64,000 nucleotides of DNA from the NCBI GenBank assembly GCA_964270895.1, contig OZ185437.1; one strand, given 5' to 3'. The notes under the pieces are model-generated. The model was given only the letters and a program-made list of their open reading frames with translations, had not been told where the DNA came from and did not search any database. A program made the translations under genes and the position numbers. Position 1 is the stretch's first letter. Each line of letters starts with the position of its first letter. The stretch is from Podarcis filfolensis. Lineage: Eukaryota. Positions 5,401 to 48,855 of the stretch are shown piece by piece.

Positions 5401-6569
5401 TTGTTCTCTCCTGGATTCAATCAACAGTTCAGACACGTAGAAGCCAGTTCATTAACCCTGTACAGGAATGTATCCATATCTTGGGGAAATGCTCCGAGAG
5501 TGATTCATTTGCTGGCAAAATCAAAATCACATGGCTCTGCTTTGCTGATTCCATTTCAATTTTTATTTTAGCAGCTAGAATTAAGACAAACCTCTTGCTA
5601 GTCGAGATAATTACACGCCATCCTCTCCTAACCAATGGGTGTGCTGCATTATAATCCCAGAGGGGATTTTTGTTTTAGTTTTTTTTTAGTTTTTCTGAAA
5701 GCTCCACATGTGTTATCATAAAACACCTGTTAGAATGCAGATCATTTGCACAAAAGTAACAATCTATCTCTATAAATTCCCACCGGTCCTTATAATTATC
5801 TCAGCTATTTAATTATTGATTGTAAAGCTTCAGAACTGTGGTTTGACACCGTAGACATTAAGGTATGGGCAGGGAGAACAGCGACTGGCAAGGAAAGGAT
5901 ACAATTTGGAAATGCATAGCAAGGTCCCTATTTTCCAAAGGAGATAAGCAGCTTTCTCTGCTCAAATGGAGCAGAAAAAAGGGTTTTATGTTTTTTCTCT
6001 ACTGCACTCTGTATTTTGCAGTAGCTGCTCTGCAGCATACATATGGGTTTCATAGCCAGCAGGGAGGAGGCAAGCTGTTGGAAAGGAACATCCAGTGGGG
6101 AGCCAGTTGTGTGAATGTCTGGAAATGGTGAACTCATACTTTATAGTTCTAAATGTTTGGGACTCACTATCCTTCCCTAGCAATTCTCAAATATGTCGGT
6201 TAGATTAATGTTATGTTATTGAGAGGTGTGTTGTTTTTTAACTAGGATTCCACAGATATATGTTGGTGCGTTATTCTTAGCTGTTTGGGTTTCCTTCTAG
6301 AAGGAAAAATGGGGTATAAACGGGAATTGAAAATAAAATCAATATACCCAGCAAAGCTGTGACATTAAGCATGTTAAAATACCCTGTCAAAAAGAAAGAA
6401 AGAAATTTCATTGTGCACCAAAAGGACTAAAGTCAGGTGCCCGGTGAGCTTCCTTGGGAAGGGCACATCTTAAACAGGGGCCACTAATGAAAAAGCCTTC
6501 TCTCTCGTTACTACGTACCTACATATTTCAACGAACTGTTTAATGGGTGCACAGTTTTCTCTGCAGGAA

Positions 6570-6725
6570 GCGGATGAGGGGAGGGGGATTATTGGTTTGT
6601 GGGGTTTTTTTGTTCTTGTTTTTATTATGTATTTTGTGTTTTCATATTGTATTTTTATGTTGCGAAGCACCTTGAGATCTACAGATGAAGGGCAGTATGC
6701 AAATGTAATAAATAAATAAAAAACC
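6570..6725 (+). mobile_element. L2-type LINE 3' tail
   Basis: T-rich tract, then GATGAAGGGCAGTATGCAAAT and (TAAA)n end. Confidence 0.6.
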
Positions 6726-6779
6726 ACAAATAAAAATAGAATCATTACATTAAAACATCTTACTGAAAACAGATACTTG

Positions 6780-6907
6780 GGGGGATGGGGGGTGCTGTTG
6801 GTTTGTTTTTGTTTTATTATGTATTTTGTGTTTTTATGTTGTGAGCCACCTAGTGATCTTCAGATGAAGGGTGGTATATAGATTTAATAAATAATAATAA
6901 TAATAAA
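6780..6907 (+). mobile_element. Second L2-type LINE 3' tail, similar to 6570-6725
   Basis: Shares TTTTATTATGTATTTTGTGTTTT and CAGATGAAGGG with the neighbour; ends in (TAA)n. Confidence 0.6.
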
Positions 6908-9900
6908 GAATTCAACAAAGAAGTCTTGTCAGCAGAATGACTTCTGCTGGGCAACGGGTTCCCCCCCCCCATGCATCCCCAGGAACTGGGTTGGCAGAAC
7001 CACTGGAAATGATTAGTGGAATTCAAAGGATCCAAATTTCATTTTTTTCAAAAGAGGCCTTACCAACACTTCCCCTCTCTTCTCAGAGGAGGCATTAACC
7101 ACCCCTGAGGTTCATTTCCCCATCCTTGCCTGGCAGGTTTCAGCTGATTTGCTGAACGAACTTCGCTCTTTTTGCCACAGCTGCCAGGCGTGAGTTATTT
7201 TCTGAATTAGATTCTATTGCCTCTTTCTTACCAAGTACAACTGAAAATGTCCTCCTCCTCAGGAGGGAGCAAAGAAGGGAGAGATTCAAAACTGCACAAC
7301 ACAGCAGGGCTACAACCTCCCCCCCAAATTGGTAGCATCTTGTTCCAGCACCAAAGTGTTTTTTTTTTATCGTGCTGTGTATTTCATACAAAAAAAAAAA
7401 TCACACCACTTGCTGTGTGGATGTGGGGAAAGAAGAGAATATGAAGAAAGTTTAGCATCTTGTCAGGTCAGGGATTGTAGCCTTAGAAAGAGAAATAGGC
7501 AATTCAAAATCCAAAGACTTGAAGATGGTGCCTGGAGAAAGGAGGAGATCAAAGAGCAGCTCAGCAAGCACCTGAGCCTTTCAGAAAAACATACTGTGAA
7601 CTTCCAGTCTTCAAAAAGGGGACTCAAGCTCTTTAAAGTAAAATTCCTTTTGGTCTTCCTGTGGCCTGATACAATAGCAGCCATGCCCTCATACAGTTGG
7701 TGCACACGCAGAGGTTCCCCCCCAGCTTGCTTAAAATAACTATGTTTTGCCAATTATAAACCCCTCCCTTTTGCAGATCAAGGCAGTAGACAAGTAGCAC
7801 TACAATGAATGAAATACATTCTAAATAATAAGCTACGCAGTGTTCATTTCAATAGATGTCAAAGAAGATGTGCATATTGTGTAACGACTAAGAGTGTTAT
7901 CCTTCCCTGCAGTCTACCAGGGCTGTGCGGAGAAGCAGAGCCACCACATTTGCAGCCCGGTCATGCACAGCGTCTGGTGCAGATTGGTATGCTGGCTTGA
8001 AGAGGGTGCAGCAAATGGACCCAGATTGAATCTGTTGCCGTCATTCAATAGCAGAGGGGCCAGTTCAGCCCTTCCCTCTGCCCACCCTAGAAATACTTGC
8101 TTTGAGTCCACTAGCTGCCACTGGTTGGGACTCTTGCAGGCGCCACCTCCACACAGCCATACATTTGGCAGGCAGAAGAGGGTGCTCTGTGTTTACAAAA
8201 CAATTCCGGCATCCTCTCAAGTGGTGGGCCAGTGAGCAAGAACAGAGCTGTCAGAACCACACAATCTCCCCACCACCATAGACCCTGGAGCAAAGGATGT
8301 TTGGATTTCTGTAAACTGGTAGTTCTAAAACACATAATCCTTACTAACTTCTGTTTATATCCCACCTTTCAGACAATCTTACATGGTCACTAAAAAGAAA
8401 GACTTGCATATCAAGAGTTACCTTAACTTAAAATAACGTGACTATCTGAGACCACCCCAAGAGTTCTTGTAATCTTGTAATCTTGTATGACTAGTACATA
8501 TAAATCAGTGCATTTTCACAATCTGAAGCAATTTCACACCATGGAGCAGATTGCATTAACCAAGTTTGCACTATGTTTTGTAGCTCTTCAGACCTTCTAC
8601 AAGTAGCTTCTGGATGACACAAACGAGAAATCCAGGATTGGAGTTTAGCTAGTTCCTGTCATCATAAAACCCGTATCATGTTCTCTGACCTGCTACATCT
8701 GTGTCAGACTGGGCTCTGCACAACAGCACACCCCTGTCTTTTGCTTGTAGGGATTAGCCAGTGTGGCTGAACGCAATGTAAAATTGCAAGGAGAATGTGG
8801 CCTGTGGATTTACTTTGTGATGCTGTCATAATAAAATTATTCGTGACATGGTGCTGATCCAGCGGTTCTGTAGGTGAACTACATTGCCCTCAATTAGATT
8901 TTCCCACAAACAACCATCTCAGCACAAGAAGTTAGAACGGATGCAGAGATCTAACAAGACCTAAGCAAAATATAACGATACTTACAAAAGGTTGAAACAA
9001 AGGTACATTCTCCACCCTCCACCCCATTTTAAATCCCCCATTTTAAATTTAAGATACATGCTTTTCTGGAACAAAGGTAAAGGTCATTGGAAAACTAATG
9101 TGTGAAATTATCCGCAGAATTGACGGTGTTGTATCTGTACCACTAGATTTATTGGGAGAAATTCAACATCATCCTAAACAAATATTATTTCAGTGCAAGT
9201 ATTTCTGCTGGTCTGATAAAACGACCTCCCTTCTACCCTCCATGTGCTGTTCTAGGGGTTCTCCTGACTCCCCAAAGCAAATTGAGGAGGTATGTGATGG
9301 TGGGGAAGCCCTGGTGGGAGCCCTTGTGCTGGATCCTACTGCCAAAACTACTTAGTTGACTCCAGCCCAAAGTCAGGAAAGTAGTAAGACATACATCACT
9401 CTGAGGGGTGATCAGAGTCTTTCAAAACAAGTATTTGGGAAAAGGTTACAGTGTGCACTACAAAGATGCCTCCCAATAACAAACACAGGATACAAGCTGG
9501 CCAAACTTAATTTTTAAAAAAATTCTTATTGATTTTAATGGGAAAGTGTTAAACAAGTTCCCGAATCCCAGCCAACTTTGGCTGGATCGTGCTAACCTCT
9601 GTGTTTACACAGATGCCTGAGCTAACATAAGATGAGATCTCCCACCCTAAAGTAGCTGGGGCATCTGAATGAATATGTCAAATGGTAGGATTATCACTTT
9701 TTCATTTCCATTCTTGACAAAATTACCTCATGACTTGCTGAAAGGACACGCTTCATCTGGAAACACTATGACATCAAGAAAAAGGAGACCTAGCCATAGT
9801 TTCCCAAATAAACAATTCATCCATTGGGTTGCATTGATTGTTTATTTGGCTGCTTTTCTTGGTTTTCTACAACATATAAATGCTATTATGCATAGACAAT

Positions 9901-10250
9901 AACAGTGGACGAAGAATAACCAGGAATGAGTTTGAGCTACTCCAGAGGCGAAGATTTCTGCAGCTTCTAGGATCATTCTCTTATCCTTTTCTATATGAAA
10001 ACAATAATTAAAAACGGAGGTCTCAGAAGGAAATAAGATTGGCAATGATTATTAATGCAAGCCATCAGCAACTGTAAAAACAACCTGAGGCCATCGAGTA
10101 ATGCCGTTTTTTCAGTAAAGCCACTCACTGCTTTGTAAGAACAACCATCGGTATGCCTACAGCACTTCTTAGCTTATCTTAGAGTGTAATTACAAAAAAA
10201 CCTTTGCATCAGTTCCAGGCTGATGAACAAAAGACTGATTTTTCATTGTC

Positions 10251-10251
<1 letters not shown>

Positions 10252-10296
<45 letters not shown>
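10252..10296. repeat. (AC)n microsatellite
   Basis: Direct reading. Confidence 0.98.
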
Positions 10297-10300
<4 letters not shown>

Positions 10301-11141
10301 TCTTAAACCTTCCTTCTTCCCCCAGTGAATCACCTCTCAGGTGGGCATCATTGCCATTAAAAGAGAACAAGGGAGGCATTCATTGTGAATTCTGGCACCT
10401 CTTTTTCTAGAAAAATAGCACAGATAACCACCACCACCACCACAGTCTATTTGAAAATCACTACCATCACCATAGTTGGCACAGTGCTTTTGCATGAGAT
10501 TGCAGCCCCCAAAGACGAGTGTCTTCTGGGGCTGTGCATTAGAGCATTTTGGTAAGGGTATGTGATGCCCATTATGGGTAGGACATGCACAATCATCTGT
10601 CCTGTTTAGAGGGGCCAAATATGGACCAGGGAATTTGGGTTGTCTGCTCCACAGTGGCTTCCAGTACTGATCTTTGCATGAGATGCACTGTGACAAATCC
10701 ACTGTGGTTTTGCATGAATGAAACAGTTGTTCCACATATTATCACTGGATGAAGCAGCTATTATTTTATTTTCACAACTATATTATGGATGTCATCCTGA
10801 TGCGGGATCTGAGCAGTATGAGTCATCGTCTCCTTACATTGCTTTAATAGAAAGTACATATACATCAGGGCAGCTAAATGCAGTTTCAAAGACTTAAATA
10901 AAGCCTCTTGGGGCTTTTATGAAGATTGATGTCATCATTAGCTGTAGCTCCTTTCCGCCTAGCTTATCGTTAGATTTGTGGCTCAAGATGAGCTATAACT
11001 AAATACAGCTTCCCGTTCATAATATTCTTCTTCAGGATGAAGAGCCAAGCAAAGATTATAGTTTTCCTCTCAGCAAATCACTGGAGGTAACAGTGCAATG
11101 CTACAACTTTTATGAGTTTTTATAGAACACACTGAAATTAT

Positions 11142-11205
11142 TAAGAACATAAGATGATCCTTCTGGATGAGGCAAGTGGTCCATCTAGTCCAGCATCCCG
11201 TTAGT
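11142..11205 (-). mobile_element. SINE/LINE 3' tail fragment; same family as 55918-56002
   Basis: TAAGAACATAAG...CCATCTAGTCCAGCATCC resembles the reverse complement of the 55918 copy. Confidence 0.45.
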
Positions 11206-11450
11206 GGAACTGTGGAGGGGGAAAACAAACTCTCATCAAGATCAAAGCTGAAATTAAAAAATTTGGATTCAGGTAAAGCTGGCATTTTGATGCAGCAGAG
11301 CCTCTGAGAGGAGAGTGCAGCCATTACTGCCCAGATCTCAGCACAGGCCATGGTGCCTTGCAATATACCAGACTCCCTGCCATCCCATCTCACCCCTCAC
11401 TGTCCTGGTAGCAGCAGCAATGACCCCACTGCCAGGAAGATAGCTTTGTG

Positions 11451-17110: not shown

Positions 17111-17460
17111 AAAGGTAAAGGGACCCCTGACCATTAGGTCCAGTCATGGCCGACTCTGGGGTTGCGGCGCTCATCTCGCTTTATTGGCCGAGGGAGCCGG
17201 CGTACAGCTTCCGAGTCATGTGGCCAGCATGACTAAGCCGCTTCTGGCAAACTGGAGCAGCGCACGGAAATGCTATTTACCTTCCCACCAGAGCGGTACC
17301 TATTTATCTACTTGCACTTTGACGTGCTTTCGAACTGCTAGGTTGGCAGGAGCAGGGACTGAGCAACGGGAGCTCACCCCATCGCGGGGATTTGAACCGC
17401 TGACCTTCTGATCGGCAAGCCCTAGGCTCTGTGGTTTAACCCACAGTGCCACCCGCATCC
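17111..17460 (+). mobile_element. Sauria SINE, full length
   Basis: AAAGGTAAAGGGACCCCTGACCATTAGGTCCAG head through TTAACCCACAGTGCCACCCGCATCC tail. Confidence 0.95.
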
Positions 17461-21039: not shown

Positions 21040-21490
21040 GCCAGCCAACCTAAAAAGAAAGTCAAGCAGGTCGGCCTTATAATCTCTCCCAAAAACCTGC
21101 AAGAGATGCTCCCAGGTAGAAATCCCACAGCCTTGGAGCAGCTGATGGTTTTGCTTCTAACTGCAACATTTCTCATTTCGTGCAGCACACGTCCACGAAG
21201 CAGGGACTGATTAGAGGACTGAAGTTGGCCTGGGTAGATAATACAAAGAGAGATTGTCTTGGAGATATGAAAGGCCAAATCCATGAAGGGCTTCAAAGGT
21301 TATTGCCAGCACCTTGAATGAATGAATGAATGAATGGTAGCTAGTGAAATATGCAGTGGGAGCTGTATATATTTGTATCTCCCAATATCTATTAGGAGAC
21401 ATGTAACTGCATTTTGCACTAGCTAAAGCTTTCAAGATGTTTCCAGGGGCAGCTTCATATATAGTGCATTACAGCAGCCATGCCTGAAGG
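21040..21490 (-). mobile_element. Degenerate L2 LINE 3' region
   Basis: Minus-strand motifs resembling LDYCNALY...LVQNA and FKVLAITFEALHGFGLSYLQDNL; interrupted by (GAAT)n. Confidence 0.75.
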
Positions 21491-21715
21491 TTACGAATAC
21501 AACTTAACAAGACTTCCCCAGTCAAAGGAAAAAGTTTGTCCAATTAACAGAGTCAACGGAAATTACAAAGTTCTCCTAAAACAACAGAGTTTTCTGGCAT
21601 TTTGAAAACCAATACATTGATTATGGAATATGGACTACAGCTTACTTTATCAGTTGCATCTGAAAAAGTGAGTTAGAGTCCACAAGTTACTTTGTTTTTG
21701 CTGCAAGAGACTTTA

Positions 21716-22155
21716 CCCTATCTGCACTATACATTTAAAGCAGTATCATACCACTTCAAACAGTCACTTCAAACAGTCATCATCCCTAAGAATCCTGGGA
21801 ACTATAGTTCAAGTGTGCTGAGAGCTGTTAGGAGACCCCTTTCCTCTCACAGAACTGTGATTCCCAGAGCTCCCTAGAAAGAGAAATTGATTGTTAAACC
21901 ACTCTGGGAATTGTAGCTCTAGGAGGGGAATAGGGGTCTGACAACTCTCAGCACCCTTAACAAACTATAGTTCCCAGGATTCTTTGAAGGAAACCATGAC
22001 TGTTAAATTGGTATTGCTGTTGACATCCACCCGTCTCAAGAGACAATGGAGTGCACCTCCAGGGGTGAAGTCAAAGCACTGTGTTAGCAGCACCGAAGTG
22101 ACCTTTCCAGGGCAAAAGTGGTATAATAGTGCTTTATATGTATAGTGCAGATGGG
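21716..22155. mobile_element. Long palindromic MITE-like element with a ~100-bp insertion (22015-22114)
   Basis: Nested inverted arms, e.g. AAGAATCCTGGGAACTATAGTT / AACTATAGTTCCCAGGATTCTT and TCTGCACTATA / TATAGTGCAGA. Insert flanked by AAATTGGTAT / AAAGTGGTAT. Confidence 0.75.
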
Positions 22156-22239
22156 ACTTAATACTACTTTTCTCTCGGAAAGTTTTAGTTACTGTAACTA
22201 CCTGGTTATCCAAAGGCATGCCAAGGGAAGCTCTCAGAC

Positions 22240-24341
22240 TTCCGGGTCAGCGCTAACGACGAATGGCGGAGTTCCTCCGATCGGAGGAACGGGCTCTGTG
22301 GAAATTGGGTCTTCCCGCCGCGGCGAAGGCGGGGGCCCACTAGAAATCCCAGGTGGAGAAGCCTGGGAACGTGGGGTTCAGCAGAGCACCAAGAGCGCCT
22401 CCCCTACTCACGAGGAAACCCCTTTTCGGGGCTCCGGAGTGAAGTGGGGTGAGTAGCGCGGTGCTGCGAACCGATCGCTATTTCCATGGAGGGAAGCCGC
22501 GCAGACTTTTTCCTGATGACATTTGGACTCCAAATCAAGTACCCGTGAGTAAAAACGGAGAATTGGATTAAGAAATTTGCAAAACTTATGAATTAGGCAC
22601 GAAGCGGGAAGGTTTAAACAGGAAGTCCGCCTTCCGCTTTTTGTATATACACTGAAGCAAAGACCTTGCAACCTAATAGCCTGGAAAACTGCTTTAAAGT
22701 TGGAAATTTCCTGCATCCACAACCAATAAAACCCCCTTGGAAGCAGGAGAAAAGGGGGGGGGGATTTGACTGTTTAATCCTGCAGGAGGAGAGTAAAGGA
22801 ATTTAAGTTTCCATCGTCCCAAACCTGGGGACGGGGTGTCGGGACAGAAATTGTTTGAGACGTCCATTGCTTGAAAGCGGAGTACTTTGACAGATAGTTA
22901 AAAAAAAAAAGAGAAACAAATTAACTTTAACGCTACTTTCTGTACTTCTGCATTTTAAAGAAACAAAGTTTTGAAATCGAAAGTAATCTCCTTTGTTGGA
23001 TACATTTTAAAAATGGATACAAATAGAAACTGTGTCCCCTAGAGGGAGCCTGTCAGTTTGTGGTTGCAGTTTACTGGAGACTCTACAGCTGCGAGATTTG
23101 GATCGTGGGACCAGCCGTTTGACCTTGAACAGAAATGTGTTGGAAGGAAGGTTTGGTGTCTGCCCTTGGCATGACAAATGTTTTGCTGGAGCAGCTGCAT
23201 GAGAAAATGAACTTGATGCATGAAAAATTGGACTTGATGAGTGCTGTGGCCAGTGAATATGATTTAACAGAGAATAAGGATAAAGAAGTTATACAGCTAT
23301 CAATTCAGGAATCTGGTTTAACAAGGCAAGTCCAAGGGCAGATTAAGAAGGAAGAGGCAGTGATTACTCCTCAAACAACACAAATGGAGAGATCCAAAGT
23401 CCTGCAGGAACCAAAGCCACTGCGTTGGAAGATTGAACTTGGAGAGTGCTGGGAAGTGTTCGAAGTCAAGGAAGCTTTTAACTCTAGTGGGACTGTGAAA
23501 CAGGTGAATAACTATCTTCTGGATAAATATTTTTTGGATTACAAAGATGACGACGGGGAGTGGGACTGGGGGGAAGGGGCCAGCCTGACGAAGGAAAATG
23601 GAAACTATTACCGGATGGAACCCTCCGGAGACCCACTCCCCAAGAAACCAACAATAGACAAAGAAGTGCGTAAGCACAAACAAGAACAAGAAAATTTGCA
23701 GAAGGGGCCTAGAAGAGATTTAAGGGCCTCGGACATAAGAACACGATTGATGGACTGGATGTAATGGACAGAAAGGACTGACACAACCCGAAACCAGGAA
23801 GAAGGGACGTTGGATAAAAATTTGAGATATCAAGGGAAATTCTTTTGTTAATTTTGGAATTAGTGTAACATTAATGAAATATCAGGGAATATGCTGGAAA
23901 GGAACTAAATTGGCTTTAGCAGAAATGATTTAAGGAGATATGTATGAATATGATGTAAACTTTGAAATTTTAAGATTTTTAAGATAAGGTCAAAGAAATT
24001 AAGGTAAATTGAATAACAGATTATATTAAAAGATGGAAAGGTGATGTTGAATCAATAAATAAGATAGATTGTGAAGATTAATCATTTAAATTAAAATTGA
24101 GACATGGGAAGAATTTGCTGGAATAACAAATTAAACTAGAATACAAAAAGGGAGGTGTGAGGAGGTTCAAGAAATAAGCAAATGAAAAGTTGTAATCAGA
24201 GATTTGTATTTTTCTTTCTTTCTTTTTTTGGTTTTTTTTGTTTTGTTTTATTTTTTGCTGTATTTTTCTGTTTTTCTTGTTTCTTTTTTGTGTTTATGTA
24301 TGGATGAAATGTTGAATAAATATCATTTAAAAAAAAAAAAG
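22240..24341 (+). mobile_element. Non-autonomous L1-related retroelement, apparently full length (HAL1-like architecture)
   Basis: 15-bp TSD GGGAAGCTCTCAGAC (22225-22239 / 24342-24356); CpG-rich 5' end (GAC)TTCCGGG...AATGGCGG; one ORF; AATAAA at 24315 and poly(A) from 24329; 3' UTR motifs shared with L1 tails in this window. Confidence 0.85.
23135..23764 (+). CDS. Orphan 209-aa ORF of the 2.1-kb retroelement (Glu/Lys-rich, short coiled-coil-like N-terminal segment); may be a pseudogenised copy of a longer ORF
   Basis: Longest non-tandem-repeat ORF in the window, co-oriented with the element's poly(A). No RT or endonuclease motifs seen. Confidence 0.55.
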   Translation: MCWKEGLVSALGMTNVLLEQLHEKMNLMHEKLDLMSAVASEYDLTENKDKEVIQLSIQESGLTRQVQGQIKKEEAVITPQTTQMERSKVLQEPKPLRWKIELGECWEVFEVKEAFNSSGTVKQVNNYLLDKYFLDYKDDDGEWDWGEGASLTKENGNYYRMEPSGDPLPKKPTIDKEVRKHKQEQENLQKGPRRDLRASDIRTRLMDWM

Positions 24342-27300
24342 GGGAAGCTCTCAGACCCTACATCTGTTCCAATGGACAAATTATTACTGATATGTAAACA
24401 TTCTCCCTAAAGATTCAGAGGAAGACCCTACAAGTATCACATCTGATTTGTCTGAATTAAGATTTCATTCTGACCATCTGACCACCACTTCCAAAAATTG
24501 ACTCAGAAAAGACAAAGCAGCTCTCTGGCATTTATTAACTGAAGCGCACACCTAGGTGTCAGCAGCATCTGAAAAACCCCCACTTGATTACCTCTCCCAG
24601 TGGTTTAATGTAAATGTTAAGTAGCATTGAAGTACCAACTCAAGAGGAACATCACAATCCAAATTCCAAGGAGTTGTGTTTGCTTCCACAATTACCATTC
24701 TTTGTGTCCTTCTGCCAAACGAGAGAGCGCCAGGAAAATTCAGCTGAAAACTGGAGACACTGTAACAAAATGAGAGTGATCCACCAAATCAGGATTGCAT
24801 CACCCCAAAATTCAACGTTGTGCCTGTGTTGAACAATTGTTGATAAGGAAGCCATCTGCTTCTTTCTTCAGCTGGAGTAGTTAATTCAGGACACAACATT
24901 GTGCAAGTGTGATGGGGGTTGTTTTCTCCCTCCCCCAGTGTGCATCACTTAGCATACATCAACACAGAATCTCATCTGCCATTGCTTTGTCTACTTGCCT
25001 AGTCTCATGAGACTTTTCTGACGCTTTCTATCATCCACCCACTCCTCTGGTTTGGGGGTGGGATGCTGGAACTGGAAACAAGCAGTAAATGTGAGACATT
25101 TCGTTTCACTCCTCATTATTCCCCAGTTGCTGTGGCAAAATCCCACATCTTGCCTGTGGCTAAATGTAAGAGAGAATATTATTCAGCACTCCAGCATGAA
25201 GCTCATAGTAGTGTGATATAACAACTTGCCACAATTCGCTATTTAGTGCATTTTCTGTTCAGTTTTAGCATGGGTTGCTCAGGTGAGGATCCCTAAAATG
25301 CACTCAGTGCTCCCCATTAAAATGCCAGTGAGTGTGTTATCCCACAACACGGACTTTTTAATTGGAGGACATCACAGGTTGGGGAAGTCAGTCCTTCTCT
25401 TATCCACAACTACATCAAAATATCTTTTCTAGCTTGCTTCTTCTTGGGATCTGGTGAACCTAATTGCCGTTACACTCTCTAACTTACTTTTCTACATTTC
25501 ACTGATTTCAATTAATCCAAATCTTCCAAGAGAGAAACACAAAATACTGCAGTACGCATTCCCAAATTAATGATCATCCCTTTTGAAAATGCATCTTCAT
25601 ATTATGGACAAAACAGAAAATGAATGTGGAAGTTTGGGGAGAGATTAATGTGCCTTCTTTGTAGATTGATACAGCAGTGATAGCCTCTAGGTATGTCGGC
25701 ATCTTTGTAAATTACTTCCAACATGAAAAGCCATTAATGTGCCTTTGCTCCTTACTTATTCAAGTCCATAATCATCTATTTCACTGTGTGCACCTTAGTA
25801 GAGCTCAGAAATGAGATTATCCTTCCAAGCAGAAACAACATCTTATATTCATGGTTTGCATGCTGGTGTTGAGTTTAACTTCTTCAGCCTCTTTTTCAGA
25901 AGTGTGTGTATCTGTGTATGTTGTTTGGGGGGCAGGGAGACTATTCTTACCCAGGAGGGAGGTGAATGTCTTACTTCTGGCAGCAGAATATGTCAACAGC
26001 TAACTTTTATTGTCTGCTATGTTTTGTCTTGTCTTGAAGAAAAGTGTTGGTGGTAGTGCATTAGATAGCAGGCATGGGTAAAATTTAGCACTTTGCTCTT
26101 TGGGTTTACAGAATTGGCTTGTGCGGAATAATGCAAAAAAAAGAAAAGGGTTGTTCAGGTATAAGTCAGTTATAGCAAGGACATGTTATTGTATGATAAT
26201 CACTTGGGAGTAAATAACACTAGTTATGGATCTTTCATATATTTAGTTAAGAAAATCGACTAACATAAATTATGGTACTATGTGGCATACGTTATAGGGT
26301 TTGTTTGGGCAAATTTATTTCTTATGTATAACCATGTTCAACTTGTAAGGACTGTTTCATATATTAACATTTTCCAGGTGAGAATGCATTTGTGGAGCTT
26401 TACATAGTTTCAAAGCTGCAATTTAGTACACAGCAGTGCCTCACATAAAGGAGAACTGTAATATGTGAAGTAGCCCCCAGTAATCCATCTGGCAGTTGCA
26501 CAAACCACACTACAAATAAGCTGTGAGTAATAAGAACAGCTAACTAATTGGACAGCAAAGATGCACAATGCAAAAAGATGCAAATTAGCTACCGATGATA
26601 AATGAGTTTATAATGATAAATGAGTTTTTAACAGAGGCACTATAGTTGCCTGGAGAGATTTAGCAAGGATTAATGTCAGTAAAACAACCTTGCAAAGCAT
26701 AAAGGGAATATTACTGGCAACATGATTTTAACAAGACTTTTTAACAAGACTTTTAAGGCAAAGCAAAAATGAAAAGAAAAACATCACAACCCAAAACATG
26801 TTTCAGCTGCTGCAGTTGAACAGTGCCCACTTTTCCCTCTAAGACTGCACCATGTTATTACTGATTTTCTGCTTTTATAATACTGTTTTACTGTTTTTTT
26901 ATGACATTGTTATTGTTTGTATGTTGTATTTTGAGATATTTTAAACTGGTAAGCAGTTTAGAAATGGCTTTAAAGAAATAAATAAAATAGGGCCAAGTAA
27001 GAAAACCACGTCCCAGGTTGCCTGTGAAAATTCCATAAAGCTTTATTAATCTGTTTCTGGAGCTTGGTGGTTAGTCCTAGAGTCTCAGGTTCATGCTCTC
27101 TTCCCTTGCTTCTCTCCAGCATCTGCTGCTGAAACCCGTTGCATGGCTGTAGGTGAGTGTTTATTGCTGTATCAACACTGCAGTCACGGTTTTGCACTAG
27201 AGGTCATTCAAAGGATGCATTGGTCTGATTGCTGATTGCGTGTTGTACTTGCAGAGGGATCTTCTCAGGTACCTCTAAGCTATCCTTACCAAACACAGTC

Positions 27301-29407
27301 AAGTAGTTCTATCCTACATATATTTTCGGGTAGCTATGCTTGCCCATCAGATTCTTCACATCACATAGGAAGAGACTGGGGACTTCAATTTCCAAAGAGT
27401 TTAGAAAAATAAGAGTCACATAAAGTACCTTGTTTCAGAAAGAGGAAGTAATGAGGCAGTAGGTGGTGCAACAGAGTCAATTTTGGGGAAAGGGTGCCAT
27501 TCCTTTATGTACACAGTAGCACCAGAGAAAAGTTTGAGCTACACAATTAAAATCTCAAAAGCTAAGGCTGCTTCCACACTGCTGCCTTTTAATGTTGCTG
27601 CAAAGTTGCTGATCCTTTCTTAGGTGGAAATGGAATTAAAATGAGGATTCCATATGGCACTTAACAGAGCACTATTTTCTGCATCAGAATATGCCATATC
27701 ACAAAGGAAGACTTCCTGAGGGTTCTTTTGTTATCAGGGGTTATCAGGGGTTCCAGCTGCAAGAAGGCTTCTAAGCACATTCAAGCATGCATAGAAACCC
27801 CCTTTAGTGTTTCCTGCTCCAAGTAGGAAGGTTGGGGATAGAATGAGCAGGAACGACACATACTGTACACAGATTTAGGATGGGGCTGGTGAATGCATCC
27901 CTGTGTTGTCCCCACCCTACCCCGAATTTGTCAAGCCACATAGAATAATGCCTGAGCAAGGCTATGTTTACATTTTTTTATCAATGGTAAATCAAAAGAG
28001 CTACTAAATCTCTGATGATCATGATGAAATGAAATCCATGTGACAAAAAGAGATACCATTGTTCTGGGATTGCACATCCCTCTTATTATAGGTTTCAAAT
28101 GTTAGCTAAGCAGTTCACACTTTAAAACAATAGGGTTTCCCCCCCTGTATACACAAGCACATTTGCATTTCCTGTAAATCTCGTTTTTTTCTTAATCTCA
28201 GGACCAAACAAGATGTCATGTGGGAGATTTCTGATTGGATCTTTCAGTGTAATTTTCTTCTTCCAAAAACAGGCATATCTCATCCCCTATTAGGATCAGG
28301 ACTGCAGGGGGAGGGGAACCCATTTCTCCCAACTACCCCACTGTGCTGTGCCCCCTGCCACAACCCTGAGCTGCTGCTGTCCATGCAAGGAAAAGCAGTC
28401 ACAATATGGCACCTTTCTGGTTTTACCTCTGTGCTACAGCCCTGATCCACACTTCCCCCTCTCTGTGGCTGCTTTTAGAAAAAGAAAATTATGCTGGGAG
28501 TGTCATTCACTCATTTCTATCTGAATATATAACTTCGCCCTCCAGATATTCTAAAGAAGAAGAAAAACCAGACTATCATGGAGTCCCATTATAAAACATA
28601 ATTGAGACAATAACCCCAAATATCTGAACATAATCATCTGATTTAATTCTGGGCTCTTGCATGGCCCTACAAATGAAATCTTCTAACTAGAATTTCCTGC
28701 TTATACAGACATTAGCTCACAGGTCTTTGATATTGATAGGCCTTAAAACATGACACTGTCTAGAATGTTTTGGGTTTGTTTGGGTTTTGTTAAAGCAGAG
28801 CAATATAGGATTTTAAAGTAAAACTTGAATGAAGCTTTTAGCTGCTTTTTTTTAAAAAAACCCAAACGCCTCTGCTGCTGTGCTTAACTAGATAACGATC
28901 AAGTGCTCTTCAAAGCTGCACAGGCAACATTTTGGACAGGCTCACTTTTTGCAGCTATTAAAATATACAGCTATTATGTACAAAAAAAGCACAGAAAAAC
29001 AGAGCGGCAGAGCCTTGTGGAAACCCTGATCCACTGATGTTACTGACTCAAGACAAGGATGGAGCAGGCTGCAGTGACCCAAAAGGCAGAATGTCAAGTG
29101 TTCAAGAGAAAGCTCTTTACTTGCCGGTTTGGCCCTTCATGTACTCCATCCTGGTCTTAGAAGAGTTGTGGGTGGGTTCGGGGGAGCAAGTCGTGTCTTA
29201 TCCAAGTGGTCAGGAGGGGAAACTGGCCCTGCCTCACCCTTGGTGAGGTTGGGGCTTGGTACCTGCAGTGTATGGTAAATAAATAAAAAAGTAAGTAAAT
29301 GAAGTATACACTGGAGAAATCAGCATGGACAAGAGAAAGATCTGAGCCAAATGTTGTGCCCAAATCTTCACCTGCTTCATAGGCAAGCTGTGCCCCAATC
29401 TCCAGTA

Positions 29408-29760
29408 AAGGTAAAGGGACCCCTGAGCATTAGGTCCAGTCGTGACCAACTCTGGAGTTGTGGTGCTCATCTCGCTTTATTGGCTGAGGGAGCCGGTGTA
29501 CAGCTTCCGGGTCATGAGGCCAGCATGACTAAGCCACTTCTGGTGAACCAGAGCAGCACACGGAAACGCCGTTTACCTTCCCGCCGGAGTGGTACCTATT
29601 TATCTACTTGCACTTTGACGTGCTTTCGAACTGCTAGGTTGGCAGGAGCAGAGACCGAGCAACGGGAGCTCACCCCGTCGCGGGGATTCGAACCACCGAC
29701 CTTCTGATCGGCAAGTCCTAGGCTCTGTGGTTTAACCCACAGCGCCACCCGCGTCCCCCC
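29408..29760 (+). mobile_element. Sauria SINE, full length, young
   Basis: Complete head and tail; 15-bp TSD CCCCAATCTCCAGTA (29393-29407 / 29761-29775). Confidence 0.96.
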
Positions 29761-32876: not shown

Positions 32877-33293
32877 TCTTTTTTTTTTATAATATTTTTA
32901 TTTTTTCCATATAAACACAACACAACAAACATAAACATACAAAGACAAAAACAGAACAAAAAACATGTATCATTTCATATCCTAATTTCATATACCTTTC
33001 TTCCCCGACTTCCTCATGCCTCCCCTTTCTGTATTCCAAATTCTTATCGATTGTTCAGCAAATCTTCCCTTATTTTAATTTAAATTTAGACTATTCTTCC
33101 TTATTCTCCTTGTCTTAACCATTGCTAATAGTAACCATTTACTTTCCAGTCCAACATCATTCTAACTTTCATTAACTTTGTAATATTTCTTTAAATAGTC
33201 CTTGAATTTTTTCCATTCTTCTTGCGCTGCCTCTCTTCCCTGGTTTCGGATTCTGCTCGTCATTTCTGCCAAGCCCATGTAGTCTATCACCTT
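32877..33293 (-). mobile_element. 5'-truncated L1 (ORF2 C-terminus, 3' UTR, poly(A))
   Basis: 16-bp TSD CAACCTGAAATTTCTT (32861-32876 / 33294-33309); minus-strand translation KVIDYMGLAEMTSRIRNQGREAAQEEWKKFKDYLKK; T-rich end. Confidence 0.9.
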
Positions 33294-34251
33294 CAACCTG
33301 AAATTTCTTAGTATGCCCATAGTATGCTCCAATCAATACACCCAGCACAGTCCAGTTGAATTAAATCTGCAAAACAGTTACTGCATTCATAAGAAGCCAT
33401 GACAAATGTCAAAGGCCTGAAGTCTGCAAGTCTGTAAAGGGCCATACACCTTTGTAAGGCTGTAATAAAATGCAGGACTTTGGGCTTTGCCATTGTGCCC
33501 AGCTCCCTCCTTCCTTTTCCGCTTTGAAGGAGCTCTAGAAAACTCTACATTACTTGATCCTAATAAAAATATCACCATACTGGGGCTTTGGGTTTTTAGT
33601 TATGTCATGCTATGGAGACCCTTGAGGTCTTTATCCAGGTCCTTGAAATGTTTGCATTCAAGACAGCATTTTATATTTTTTATTATTCTGCCTTGCACAT
33701 GTATCTGAGTGATACACCCCTCAGTACTGCAGCCTGTAAGCTATTTTCAGGTACTTCTGGGTCATAAGATTCAGTGCCTGTCTAGGAAGCAGAGCCTCTT
33801 TTTGCTTCAAGATTCCACAACAACAGTCTCCTTAAAGTCTTAAGAGGCATGTCACTTGAATTAGAAAAATGGTAAGCCCTCATATTCTATTCTACCGGAG
33901 CATTATAAGTGCTCATGCTATTTTCACTAGAGAGAACACTTGAAAACAGAATTGTTTAAGATAAAAGTCAAGGGCTGATAAAAGATAAGAAGAGATTTTG
34001 TGCCTCTGATAGAACGGCTTCTAAAGATGAAAGGAGCAGAGAAAGCTGATATCTCGATAGCCCTGCAATGTGTCAGATTAACGGGCCCAGCTGTGGTCTG
34101 AAGAAACTATTTGTCTGAGAGCTGGTGGGGTGAGCAGGTTGAAAGCCACTGTAGTTAATAATGCCAACTGCCAAGGCACCAACCTGTAGAAGAGTTTTAG
34201 CAGCAAATACACACACTTTGTATAATGGAAGTATGGTACATCTATACTACA

Positions 34252-46368: not shown

Positions 46369-48855
46369 CTTTACAGAATGTATGGTGCTTTTCTGTCTGT
46401 GTTGCGTGGATAGGTGTCTTATTTTTGCTGGTGGAGCGAGAGATCAGAGGGCCCAGGGCATGGTTGGTTACAGTGAGTTTTGATTGTGTGTGAGGGGGTG
46501 TTGATTGCTTTGTGTGTTGTTGGGGGTGGGAATCAGGCATTGTCTTATTGGCCTGTGCATGTGATAAAGGGGAGCCCCACAGGGGTGAAGGTGTCCTCCC
46601 TTGTTTGTCCATGTGATAGTTCCAGTTTGTTGGTTAGTTTTTCTTGTAGAGCGGCCCCATACAGTTTTGTACCAGTGGTGAAAGGACATTCTCGATAGGA
46701 CCCTCTAGTGTCTAGATATGACACTCCTAACTACTGAGAGTAAGTGACATGAATACTTTGTCATGTGAGTGTGCATTATTGTTTTGGAAGACATATGTAG
46801 GGCCATTTCTGGAGTTGCTTCTCTTACCTGTTTTGTTAGTTTGCAGATTTCTTGTAAGACTGGTATCCAGAAAGGTTGGATTTTGGAGCATTCCCACCAC
46901 ATGTGGAGGCATGTGCCTGTGGCAGTGCAACCTCTCCAGCACTTAGATGAAGTTCCTGGGTGTATCATTGCTAGCTTACGTGGTGTTAGAAGTCTGTTAG
47001 GCAGTGTAGACCTTTGGCTTGCCATCCCTCATTTGGAAATTGTGTGATGCAATATGGAACTGTGGGTGATGGGCCAGGGAGATTAGTGGGGATAGGGCTA
47101 GGGACAATGTTTCTGCTTTTTCTTTCCATGCTTTAAGCATGGTCTGCATGAACCTGTTTTGTGTCATGGGGTTTTTCTTAGGTTTTGAGAAATGGGTGGG
47201 GGTGTTTCCGATCATATCTATCTCCATGTGCACCCATTGTTTCATTACGTCTTCTAAGATGTATGAGATTACGAAGCATGCTTGGTTGGCAAGGTATAGT
47301 TCTATATTGGGAATTCCCCATCCTCCTTCTGAAGAGGGGACGTACAGGAACTTGGAGCTTATTCATGGCTTTTTGTGTGCGAAGATAAGTGAGTGTAGCT
47401 TTTTCTGTCACTTCCGGAGGTGGGTTGAGGGGATCCTAATTGGAAGGATTCGGAATAAGCAGGTTAATTTCAGGAGGGTTATCATTTTGATCATGACTAG
47501 TTTGTCTGAGTGAGTGAAGTTGGTTCTACTCCATCTCTTCAGGTCTTTATTGATTTCCTGCCAGGGTGGGGGTTGTGTTGTGAAAGTACAGCTTGTTGAG
47601 GTTTCTGATTATTTATTCCCCTAAGAATCTAAATTTGGTTCAGCAAAGTTTTATCTGACTCCCTATTCTCCATCTCTCTGCATTTGCTTACTTCTCAGCC
47701 AATCTTCCTGACTTTTATCTGCCTGCCATCTCCTTGTGTCTCTGCCCAGATTTCTTTGGATGGACTCCTTGTCTTGGATACTGGCTTGTGATTGATCTTG
47801 CCTCATCCTTCTCCTCCTGCAGTGCATGTGCTCCTGCCACTCTGAGCAGCAATCCCATGAAGCAGGTTAGACTGAGAGAGACTGGCATGCCTTAAGCCAC
47901 CCACTGAGTTTTATAGCTGAACAAGGAACTATGTCAGAATTTCCCCCATTGAAAACAACACCCTGGCAAACCATTGCATCAGACTGGTTCCCACACCGAC
48001 TGCTTTATTTTTGTGTGTGATTTCAGTGATATGTGGAGTTGTGAGGGTTTGTGGATATCCCTTCCCAATAAAATGGAAAGTATTAGCCTATTACTCAAAT
48101 GGCGGAAGTAATTTGGGACAGGAAGATACAAACAAACACAGGCTGAATTTTCAAAAGTACACAAAATTAGTTTAATTTTGTTCCTTTTGAAATAATTTGC
48201 AGTTTGACCATTGCACATAAAATCCTTAAAAACATCTAGATTTTTTAATAATTGGTAAATAAAGATGATTACTTGGCAAGGCTGTACATTAATCTTTCTG
48301 TGAATTTTTAATATGGTCCCTGATAGGCACTGAACAATGATGGTTAATGGATGTAATAAATAGTTCCATCCTCAGCACAGTTTGACTGAAATGGCTTTCA
48401 GAATGTCTCCTAATCTAATCATATAGCTCTTTCAACTTTGAAATTTCCATTAAATTTTAGTGTAAACAAGAAAGTGCTTCTTTCCACGTTTCCACGTCTC
48501 CATCCATACAATATAATTTTCATCGTCATCATCATCATCAACATCACACCCCGTTAGTGTTTCCCTCTTGGAATCTACCACAACCATTTAATGACTGCAA
48601 ATCTAATAAATAGCAAAACAAATGTAAGCTCTGTCCTTGCCAAAGAGTAAATTGAGTGTAGATGAGCTTCATAAACTAATTTAACAGGTGGCCTTGCAGC
48701 TGCCTCCCAAACATAAGTCAATTATACACTTAGTATAATTTAAATGAACAAGAACTGAGTTTCTGCTTTTTGTTTGTTTGTTGATTTGTTCAATCCCAAG
48801 TACCAAAAGAAACACACACCTCATGTTCAGATAAGTGGTAAATGAACACCCGATA

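Follow-up and report, generated by a model that had tools for sequence, protein, structure and literature searches.

Positions 22240–24341 of a 64,000-nt stretch of Podarcis filfolensis contig OZ185437.1 (the window; coordinates are positions in this stretch unless another locus is named) hold an element of about 2.1 kb, which we interpret, with a probability of roughly 0.85, as a full-length member of a family of non-autonomous L1 derivatives of lacertid lizards that lacks open reading frame 2 (ORF2), i.e. a half-L1 in the sense of HAL1. Descent from L1, loss of ORF2, amplification as a family and a recent insertion with the hallmarks of target-primed reverse transcription (TPRT) are all observed. 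The head and the tail of the element are identified as L1 sequence because nhmmer matches them to L1 copies with E-values of 5.2e-41 (head) and of 1.4e-16 and 7e-22 (tail). The homology shows that the family goes back to an L1 of the local lineage from which about 3.8 kb were deleted, beginning shortly before the ORF1 end and reaching into ORF2, where only the last ~40 codons remain, and that ORF1 itself shrank from roughly 340 to about 200 amino acids (aa). The family most likely spreads by borrowing the L1 machinery.

Insertion site and age of the element

The element is flanked by an exact 15-bp direct repeat, GGGAAGCTCTCAGAC, which a repeat scan located at 22225–22239 and 24342–24356; these are the 5' and 3' copies of the target-site duplication. 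The element starts with TTCCGGG at 22240. The GAC that ends GGGAAGCTCTCAGAC is also how members of the family, and L1 itself, usually begin, the duplication thus being 12–15 bp long with 3 nt of microhomology. At the other end, AATAAA (24315–24320) is followed by 8 nt and then by the poly(A) tail (24329–24341, plus strand), read from the sequence as 12 A (24329–24340) and an extra single G at 24341, which separates these A from the 3' copy of the duplication.

Contigs of four public sequencing runs were aligned to positions 21200–25400 for occupancy, depth and variants. The strongest single piece of evidence comes from run X6 (organism C), in which a contig of 4333 nt (record 27) covers 22046–22224 and resumes unbroken at 24342–25393. 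The element and one copy of the duplication are exactly absent there, and the empty target retains one copy of GGGAAGCTCTCAGAC, including the GAC; for this reason, 22240–24341 represents an insertion event and not a chance arrangement. The site is probably empty in organism B as well, judging from a half-depth, 291-nt contig of run X3, and a mismatch-free, 1031-nt contig of run X1 begins exactly at 24341, as expected if the window's own species carries the insertion. In organisms B and C, the flanks differ from the window by about 1%, and the site is empty in C and probably in B; the insertion is therefore younger than the split from these animals, or still polymorphic. This copy was inserted recently and is missing at the same site in closely related animals.

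A preliminary description of this DNA, made from the letters alone, had listed the 15-bp duplication, the poly(A) tail and an AATAAA just before it, all of which are present. It had also judged the insertion to be young and proposed a search for an empty site, and the direct join of 22224 to 24342 in the X6 contig bears it out. The target sites in all four insertions examined consist of pyrimidines followed by A-rich purines (CC/AAGGG, CC/AAACC, TTT/AAATC and TTC/AGAAA), which fits the L1 endonuclease.

L1-derived head

The first 300 nt of the element have a G+C content of 0.60 and a CpG observed/expected ratio of 0.94, compared to 0.26 for the whole window, and are the best-conserved part among the element copies (94% and 84% identity). 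The L1-derived head of the 5' untranslated region (UTR) spans 22240–22709 on the plus strand and is presumed to contain an internal RNA polymerase II (Pol II) promoter. It was compared to a full-length, 6.2-kb L1 of Podarcis lilfordi (L007:4940–11112, OX395141.1) with an 18-bp duplication, AGAAAGCTTGGGGGTTGG, which was located via cluster members of the Podarcis ORF2 (the ORF2 clusters, P0006 and P0016, are from Podarcis muralis). ORF1 of this L1 is interrupted, with two pieces at 5944–6357 and 6402–6980, and the gene calls split its ORF2 into several parts. Window positions 22256–22709 align to L007:4960–5415 in its 5' UTR (E-value 5.2e-41) when an nhmmer profile of three element copies is used; the homology is seen only with this profile and was missed by plain blastn.

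The L007 element begins with GACTTCCTGG and contains AATGGCGG, a YY1-like box, about 25 nt inside, as does the lizard element, where the box lies at 22263–22270. Every element copy, as well as the full-length L1, has a hairpin directly after the box, which is a 20-nt palindrome in the window (22271–22290) and is found at L001:9100–9119, L002:9120–9139 and L007:4974–4996 in the other loci. The stems differ in sequence (GTTCCTCCGA/TCGGAGGAAC in the element, CCTCTTC/GAAGAGG in L1; fold z-scores −1.7 to −2.4), and the hairpin may belong to a structure that is conserved in L1 heads. The CpG-rich 5' UTR starting with (GAC)TTCCGGG and carrying a YY1-like motif, as first described, is thus confirmed and is an L1-style head; the idea that the element has a Pol II promoter of its own had to be abandoned, since the head is L1 sequence.

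ORF2 remnant and 3' UTR

The 3' part of the element has a G+C content of 0.27. Over its last ~600 nt, the element is homologous to the end of ORF2 and the 3' UTR of L1, as seen with four L1 copies. The matching L1 ends lie in loci L002, L001 and L004 and at window positions 33302–32918 on the minus strand, the L004 copy being a 5'-truncated L1. The 5'-truncated L1 tails that occur in the same loci as the element copies (e.g. L002) share the 3' end of the element. A remnant of the last ~40 codons of L1 ORF2 together with the start of the L1 3' UTR lies at 23745–23943 (plus strand; nhmmer and blastn), and it contains the stop codon of the element's own ORF. Positions 23748–23943 align to L002:18220–18404 (E-value 1.4e-16, profile of three element copies), with further nhmmer matches to L002:527–353, L001:28573–28745 and the window's own L1 tail at 33302–33117. 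The rest of the tail is an AT-rich 3' UTR (23944–24328, plus strand) that includes a T-rich tract (24197–24297) and the AATAAA; positions 24073–24338 are homologous to L1 3' UTRs, with an nhmmer E-value of 7e-22 to L002:18431–18699.

A tblastn search with a complete lacertid ORF2 (P0006, 1245 aa) found no reverse transcriptase or endonuclease in the element, with nothing beyond noise up to an E-value of 10. ORF2 survives only as the DNA remnant of its last ~40 codons, and the joint of the large deletion lies at about 23731–23745. The AT-rich 3' UTR and the lack of both enzymes had been described correctly at the outset.

Aligned contig depth peaks within 24020–24160, reaching ~8.7x10^5 at 24144 in run X1, several times the value of the rest of the element. 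The peak is accounted for by the thousands of truncated L1 tails, since the block (…GGGAGGTGTGAGGAGGTTC…) belongs to a conserved part of the L1 3' UTR. The window itself contains a 5'-truncated L1 3' end at 32879–33320 (minus strand), consisting of the last ~50 ORF2 codons and the 3' UTR, which falls in the broad L1 lineage of the element's tail. More diverged reverse transcriptase fragments are found at 46798–47563 (minus strand).

Open reading frame and its relationship to L1 ORF1p

The only long ORF of the element (23135–23764, plus strand), which encodes 209 aa as the preliminary description had noted, occupies the position of ORF1, between the L1 5' UTR and the ORF2 remnant. From the ORF list, its lacertid relatives and its similarity to L1 ORF1p, we regard it as a probable shrunken derivative of ORF1. 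The predicted protein consists of an N-terminal helix (aa 3–45/59), a remnant of the coiled-coil end and of strand 1 of the RNA-recognition motif (RRM; ~aa 47–112), a remnant of a motif of the C-terminal domain (CTD), NGNYYRMEPS (~aa 155–165), and a conserved tail, NLQKG..DLRASDIR. The window copy lacks a CA dinucleotide at 23744 that is present in about half of the family and ends with RLMDWM instead of PD.

The similarity to ORF1p is colinear along the protein. Residues 11–38 match the N-terminal part of lacertid ORF1p (hhalign E-value 0.01), and residues 47–112 match the coiled-coil end and first RRM strand of the L1 ORF1 in L002 (E-value 0.014 by BLASTP, 0.011 by hmmsearch). The best match was obtained with the P. 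lilfordi ORF, whose residues 138–185 align to the end of the ORF1p CTD and its tail with a BLASTP E-value of 4e-5 and a shuffle z-score of 7.9. In this region, NGNYYRMEPS of the element pairs with NGIIFRWEFPQ of L1, and NLQKG..DLRAS..TPD with DLQKK..ELRAL..TPD. At the nucleotide level, window positions 23576–23730 match the end of L1 ORF1 (E-value 1.4e-3). Two loci with a different L1 lineage (L005 and L006) have no DNA or protein similarity to the element, and an Rfam search of the element gave only one sub-threshold chance match.

The ORF is considerably shorter than ORF1 of L007, which measures roughly 340 aa when read as two separate pieces, and than the ORF1 of another lacertid-like L1 lineage (372 aa). 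It has no counterpart to the basic N-terminus of ORF1p or to about 70 aa of the RRM/CTD core. With only 209 aa, the ORF therefore cannot hold a full RRM and CTD, and an intact ORF1p with coiled coil, RRM and CTD is not encoded. The AlphaFold models contain a low-confidence N-terminal helix with 3–4 hydrophobic spacing and a short helix at aa 176–189, with no fold for aa 46–175. The statement of the preliminary description that no RRM or CTD motif is present thus stands for the canonical domains, for which the ORF is too short, but it does not cover the CTD-motif remnant that matches ORF1p.

Other copies and abundance of the family

A word-index protein search returned a single relative of the ORF product, the P. 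muralis gene model P0001, and an exhaustive HMMER search of 1.84 billion proteins added only three hits, a P. lilfordi hypothetical protein (P0002), a Logan-contig protein (P0003) and a weak match from a tick (P0004). The last, a tandem-repeat protein of Rhipicephalus appendiculatus (KAL1433005.1), reached an hmmsearch E-value of 4e-5 to profile positions aa 95–149 but an hhalign probability of only 1%, and is most likely a chance match.

The P. muralis locus contains a full-length copy (L001:9069–11175, OZ076971.1) that is 82.7% identical to the window copy from first to last base, with unrelated flanks, its own duplication of ~17 bp and an open 204-aa ORF. The P. lilfordi copy (L002:9089–11250, CANTUW010000076.1) is also full length, with 70% identity, the same start base and its own 17-bp duplication, and it encodes P0002. 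This copy appears to sit inside a C2H2 zinc-finger coding repeat, as both of its flanks (9060–11290) read like finger-linker sequence, and it probably disrupts a zinc-finger gene or pseudogene. Full-length copies with separate duplications are thus found at three unrelated loci, one in each of three genomes.

Summed over the ORF bins, contig depth is 68–120 thousand in run X1, 27–52 thousand in X3 and 2.8–6.4 thousand in X6, compared to 93–116, 107–123 and 8–10, respectively, in the single-copy flank. Depth of this order of magnitude rules out a single retrocopy. Run X17, only guessed to be RNA, contains contigs of the family of up to 930 nt. The part of the preliminary reading that requires a multi-copy family is borne out by these depths and by the full-length copies in P. 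muralis and P. lilfordi. The element is a deleted L1, an outcome that the preliminary description had named as speaking against its own reading if only a single copy existed, but it is not a single copy; nor is its ORF1p canonical, as it would be in a catalogued L1 or HAL1 family.

The annotated proteins that contain the element ORF are only element copies or a chimeric model, and no gene with exactly the ORF product of the window is on record. The chimera is P0001, i.e. isoform X1 of the RefSeq model LOC114587986 (L001:10001–20904), in which residues 1–178 correspond to the element ORF and a splice donor inside the element joins it to lysozyme C exons (Pfam Lys). Either the model is an artefact of annotation, or the element drives the use of a genuine alternative first exon in a lysozyme gene.

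Proposed mechanism of mobilisation

A plausible life cycle would begin with Pol II initiating at the L1-type head, where the YY1 box ~25 nt inside the element would fix the start site. The RNA would be polyadenylated at the element's own AATAAA, and the small ORF1-derived protein would be translated and would probably bind or mark its own RNA via the coiled-coil N-terminus and the conserved C-terminal tail. ORF2p of an autonomous L1 could then nick a pyrimidine/purine target and reverse-transcribe the RNA there, leaving the poly(A) tail and a duplication of 12–18 bp.

A bolder and unlikely version holds that the miniaturised protein is a specialised hijacker and not a weakened form of ORF1p. 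Without the RNA-binding core, it would retain just a trimerising helix and the conserved C-terminal DLRASDIR tail, through which it would associate with the L1 particle (L1 ORF1p or ORF2p) or bring that particle to the element's RNA. If so, the family would be a protein-level parasite of L1 that could dampen L1 activity, and the fast evolution of the ORF would reflect an arms race with its L1 host.

Evidence against the half-L1 assignment

Several points weigh against interpreting the element as a mobile half-L1 with an ORF1-derived protein. The colinear matches of the ORF to ORF1p are mostly weak individually (E-values 0.01–0.5), with hhalign probabilities of only 1–4%; MAFFT gives another register for the C-terminal half, and the limits of the deletion are accordingly uncertain. 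Two AlphaFold runs (with two and four sequences) reached predicted local distance difference test (pLDDT) scores of 47 and 44, too poor for structural support. The remaining 5' UTR (22710–23134, plus strand), which is 75–88% conserved among the element copies, has no detectable match to the compared L1 copies by blastn or by the nhmmer profile, and these copies are ~30% diverged from the head of the element, so that the exact parent L1 is not among them. Head and tail being common to L1, only the ORF bins are usable for depth, and their excess of ~230–1300 times over the single-copy flank in the three DNA runs is a ratio of summed contig depths and not a copy number. The DNA of the ORF is no better conserved than that of the UTRs (86% compared to 85–88%, and 72% compared to 71–79%), and the ORFs used for comparison were found via protein databases, so that their openness is partly a matter of ascertainment. 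Finally, it is inferred that the head acts as a promoter, that the element is transcribed and its ORF translated, and that ORF2p mobilises it in trans.

Signs of selection on the ORF and alternative explanations

The last two observations on conservation and sampling bear most directly on the strongest rival, in which the element is likewise an ORF2-less L1 derivative, but the ORF is a decaying, functionless relic and the RNA a passive template like that of a processed pseudogene; the open ORFs would then simply come from young copies picked through their proteins. The loss of the RNA-binding core and the mostly disordered AlphaFold models also favour such a relic. However, pairwise ratios of nonsynonymous to synonymous substitution (dN/dS, Nei-Gojobori), a comparison among copies that the preliminary description had proposed, are 0.41–0.61 for all six pairs of four ORFs, with dS up to ~1.1, and codon bootstrapping puts them below 1 in 99% or more of the replicates, i.e. 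significantly in each of the six. Within the eight codons of the DLRASDIR motif, the differences comprise six synonymous and zero replacement changes. The frame is open in four lineages at 32–38% nucleotide divergence; when neutral substitution was simulated at the observed divergence, the frame stayed open in 1.5%, 0.02% and 0.02% of trials, and at 32–38% divergence neutral substitution alone thus preserves it in about two of 10,000 simulations. A weaker argument is that just one of the 12 best-supported common indel variants of the family falls in the ORF, at its very end. On balance, a functionless relic appears rather unlikely, and an ORF1 remnant too small for the known RNA-binding fold seems to be kept under selection, as judged from these substitution patterns.

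It is very unlikely that the ORF is an orphan or captured frame unrelated to ORF1, in which case the element would be a new protein-coding parasite with merely L1-like ends. Searches of Pfam and of PDB sequences with the ORF returned only noise, the 1.84 billion proteins screened with HMMER contain only lacertid element ORFs and the chance tick match but no annotated ORF1p among the hits, and both 22710–23134 and much of the ORF lack a nucleotide match to the compared L1 copies. Yet the L1 5' UTR and the ORF2 remnant bracket the ORF exactly, a member of a sister subfamily matches the end of the ORF1p CTD with the BLASTP E-value of 4e-5, and three more weak matches are colinear with it, in addition to the nucleotide match at the ORF1 end. 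The Pfam result is also uninformative: none of the four element ORFs matches any family, including Transposase_22, but neither do the genuine lacertid ORF1p pieces of L007, and the blank therefore carries no weight in this lineage. The ORF, called an orphan in the preliminary description, is thus better regarded as a shrunken remnant of L1 ORF1, to which its position and its colinear, mostly weak similarity point.

A processed pseudogene derived from a host mRNA, or a single L1 with an internal deletion that was inactive from the moment of its insertion, would equally be expected to show the duplication, poly(A) tail and AATAAA, but both readings are extremely improbable and were rejected on copy number and independent insertions, as the same deleted architecture recurs from the first base to the poly(A) site at unrelated loci of two other species with their own duplications, the depth is hundreds of times that of a single copy, and both ends are L1 sequence.

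Neighbouring repeat

A very high-copy repeat (21623–22186) lies directly upstream of the insertion; its summed depth reaches 6x10^5, and contig joints of the opposite-strand and skipping types are numerous. The repeat, probably a short interspersed element (SINE) or a cluster of SINE fragments, resembles repeats at 17111–17460 and 29405–29757 and in L001.

Comparison with known systems

Among the known systems closest to the element are the autonomous L1 elements of lacertids, e.g. the full-length copy in L007. They share with it the first bases GACTTCC.GG, the YY1-like box followed by a hairpin, the first ~470 nt, the ORF2 end and the 3' UTR, as well as the type of target site and the length of the duplication. 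The element differs in lacking endonuclease and reverse transcriptase, in its shrunken ORF1 and in its size (2.1 kb compared to 6.2 kb).

Processed pseudogenes and SVA elements carry the same TPRT hallmarks, i.e. poly(A), a 12–18-bp duplication and an L1-type target. The lizard element, in contrast, has the head and tail of L1 itself and an L1-derived ORF, and it forms a self-propagating family rather than a set of host-gene copies.

HeT-A of Drosophila telomeres is a non-LTR element that encodes only a gag/ORF1-type protein and needs the reverse transcriptase of a relative. The lizard element likewise encodes only an ORF1-type protein; in contrast, HeT-A belongs to the Jockey clade, targets telomeres and has an intact gag protein. 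'ORF1-only' telomeric elements are also mentioned in the available part of 10.1101/2025.06.09.658640.

The best-matching precedent is HAL1 (half-L1) of mammals, a non-autonomous element that encodes only ORF1p (Smit 1999; Bao and Jurka 2010, as cited in the available text of PMC5753468) and that reportedly arose several times independently (PMC5753468). Like HAL1, the lizard element retains the L1 5' UTR, the position of ORF1 and the L1 3' end, has lost ORF2, has been amplified as a family and is presumably mobilised by ORF2p in trans. L1 descent, ORF2 loss and family amplification are thus common to both, whereas the intact ORF1p is not: the basic N-terminal portion and most of the RRM/CTD core are missing from the lizard ORF, which has ~200 aa, compared to roughly 340 aa. 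The lizard family also derives from a lacertid rather than a mammalian L1 lineage, still contains sequence equivalent to about 40 codons from the end of ORF2, and has been active recently, with an empty site in close relatives.

No description of a half-L1 or HAL1 in lizards or Podarcis was found in the searchable full-text literature, a search to which Repbase and Dfam do not belong. As far as the literature searched shows, half-L1 elements are otherwise reported only in mammals, with a whole ORF1p. The view of the element as a protein-coding parasite of lizard L1, possibly undescribed, is therefore kept in part: it is multi-copy, most likely trans-mobilised and without a lizard description in that search, but it is not a separate system, both of its ends being L1. 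For genome annotation, the family explains chimeric and 'hypothetical' lizard gene models, e.g. Podarcis LOC114587986. It makes testable the question of which parts of ORF1p an RNA needs to capture L1 ORF2p in trans. The lizard half-L1 family arose independently, grew to hundreds of copies and was still inserting after the split of close relatives, and it offers a natural system for the study of L1 parasites outside mammals.

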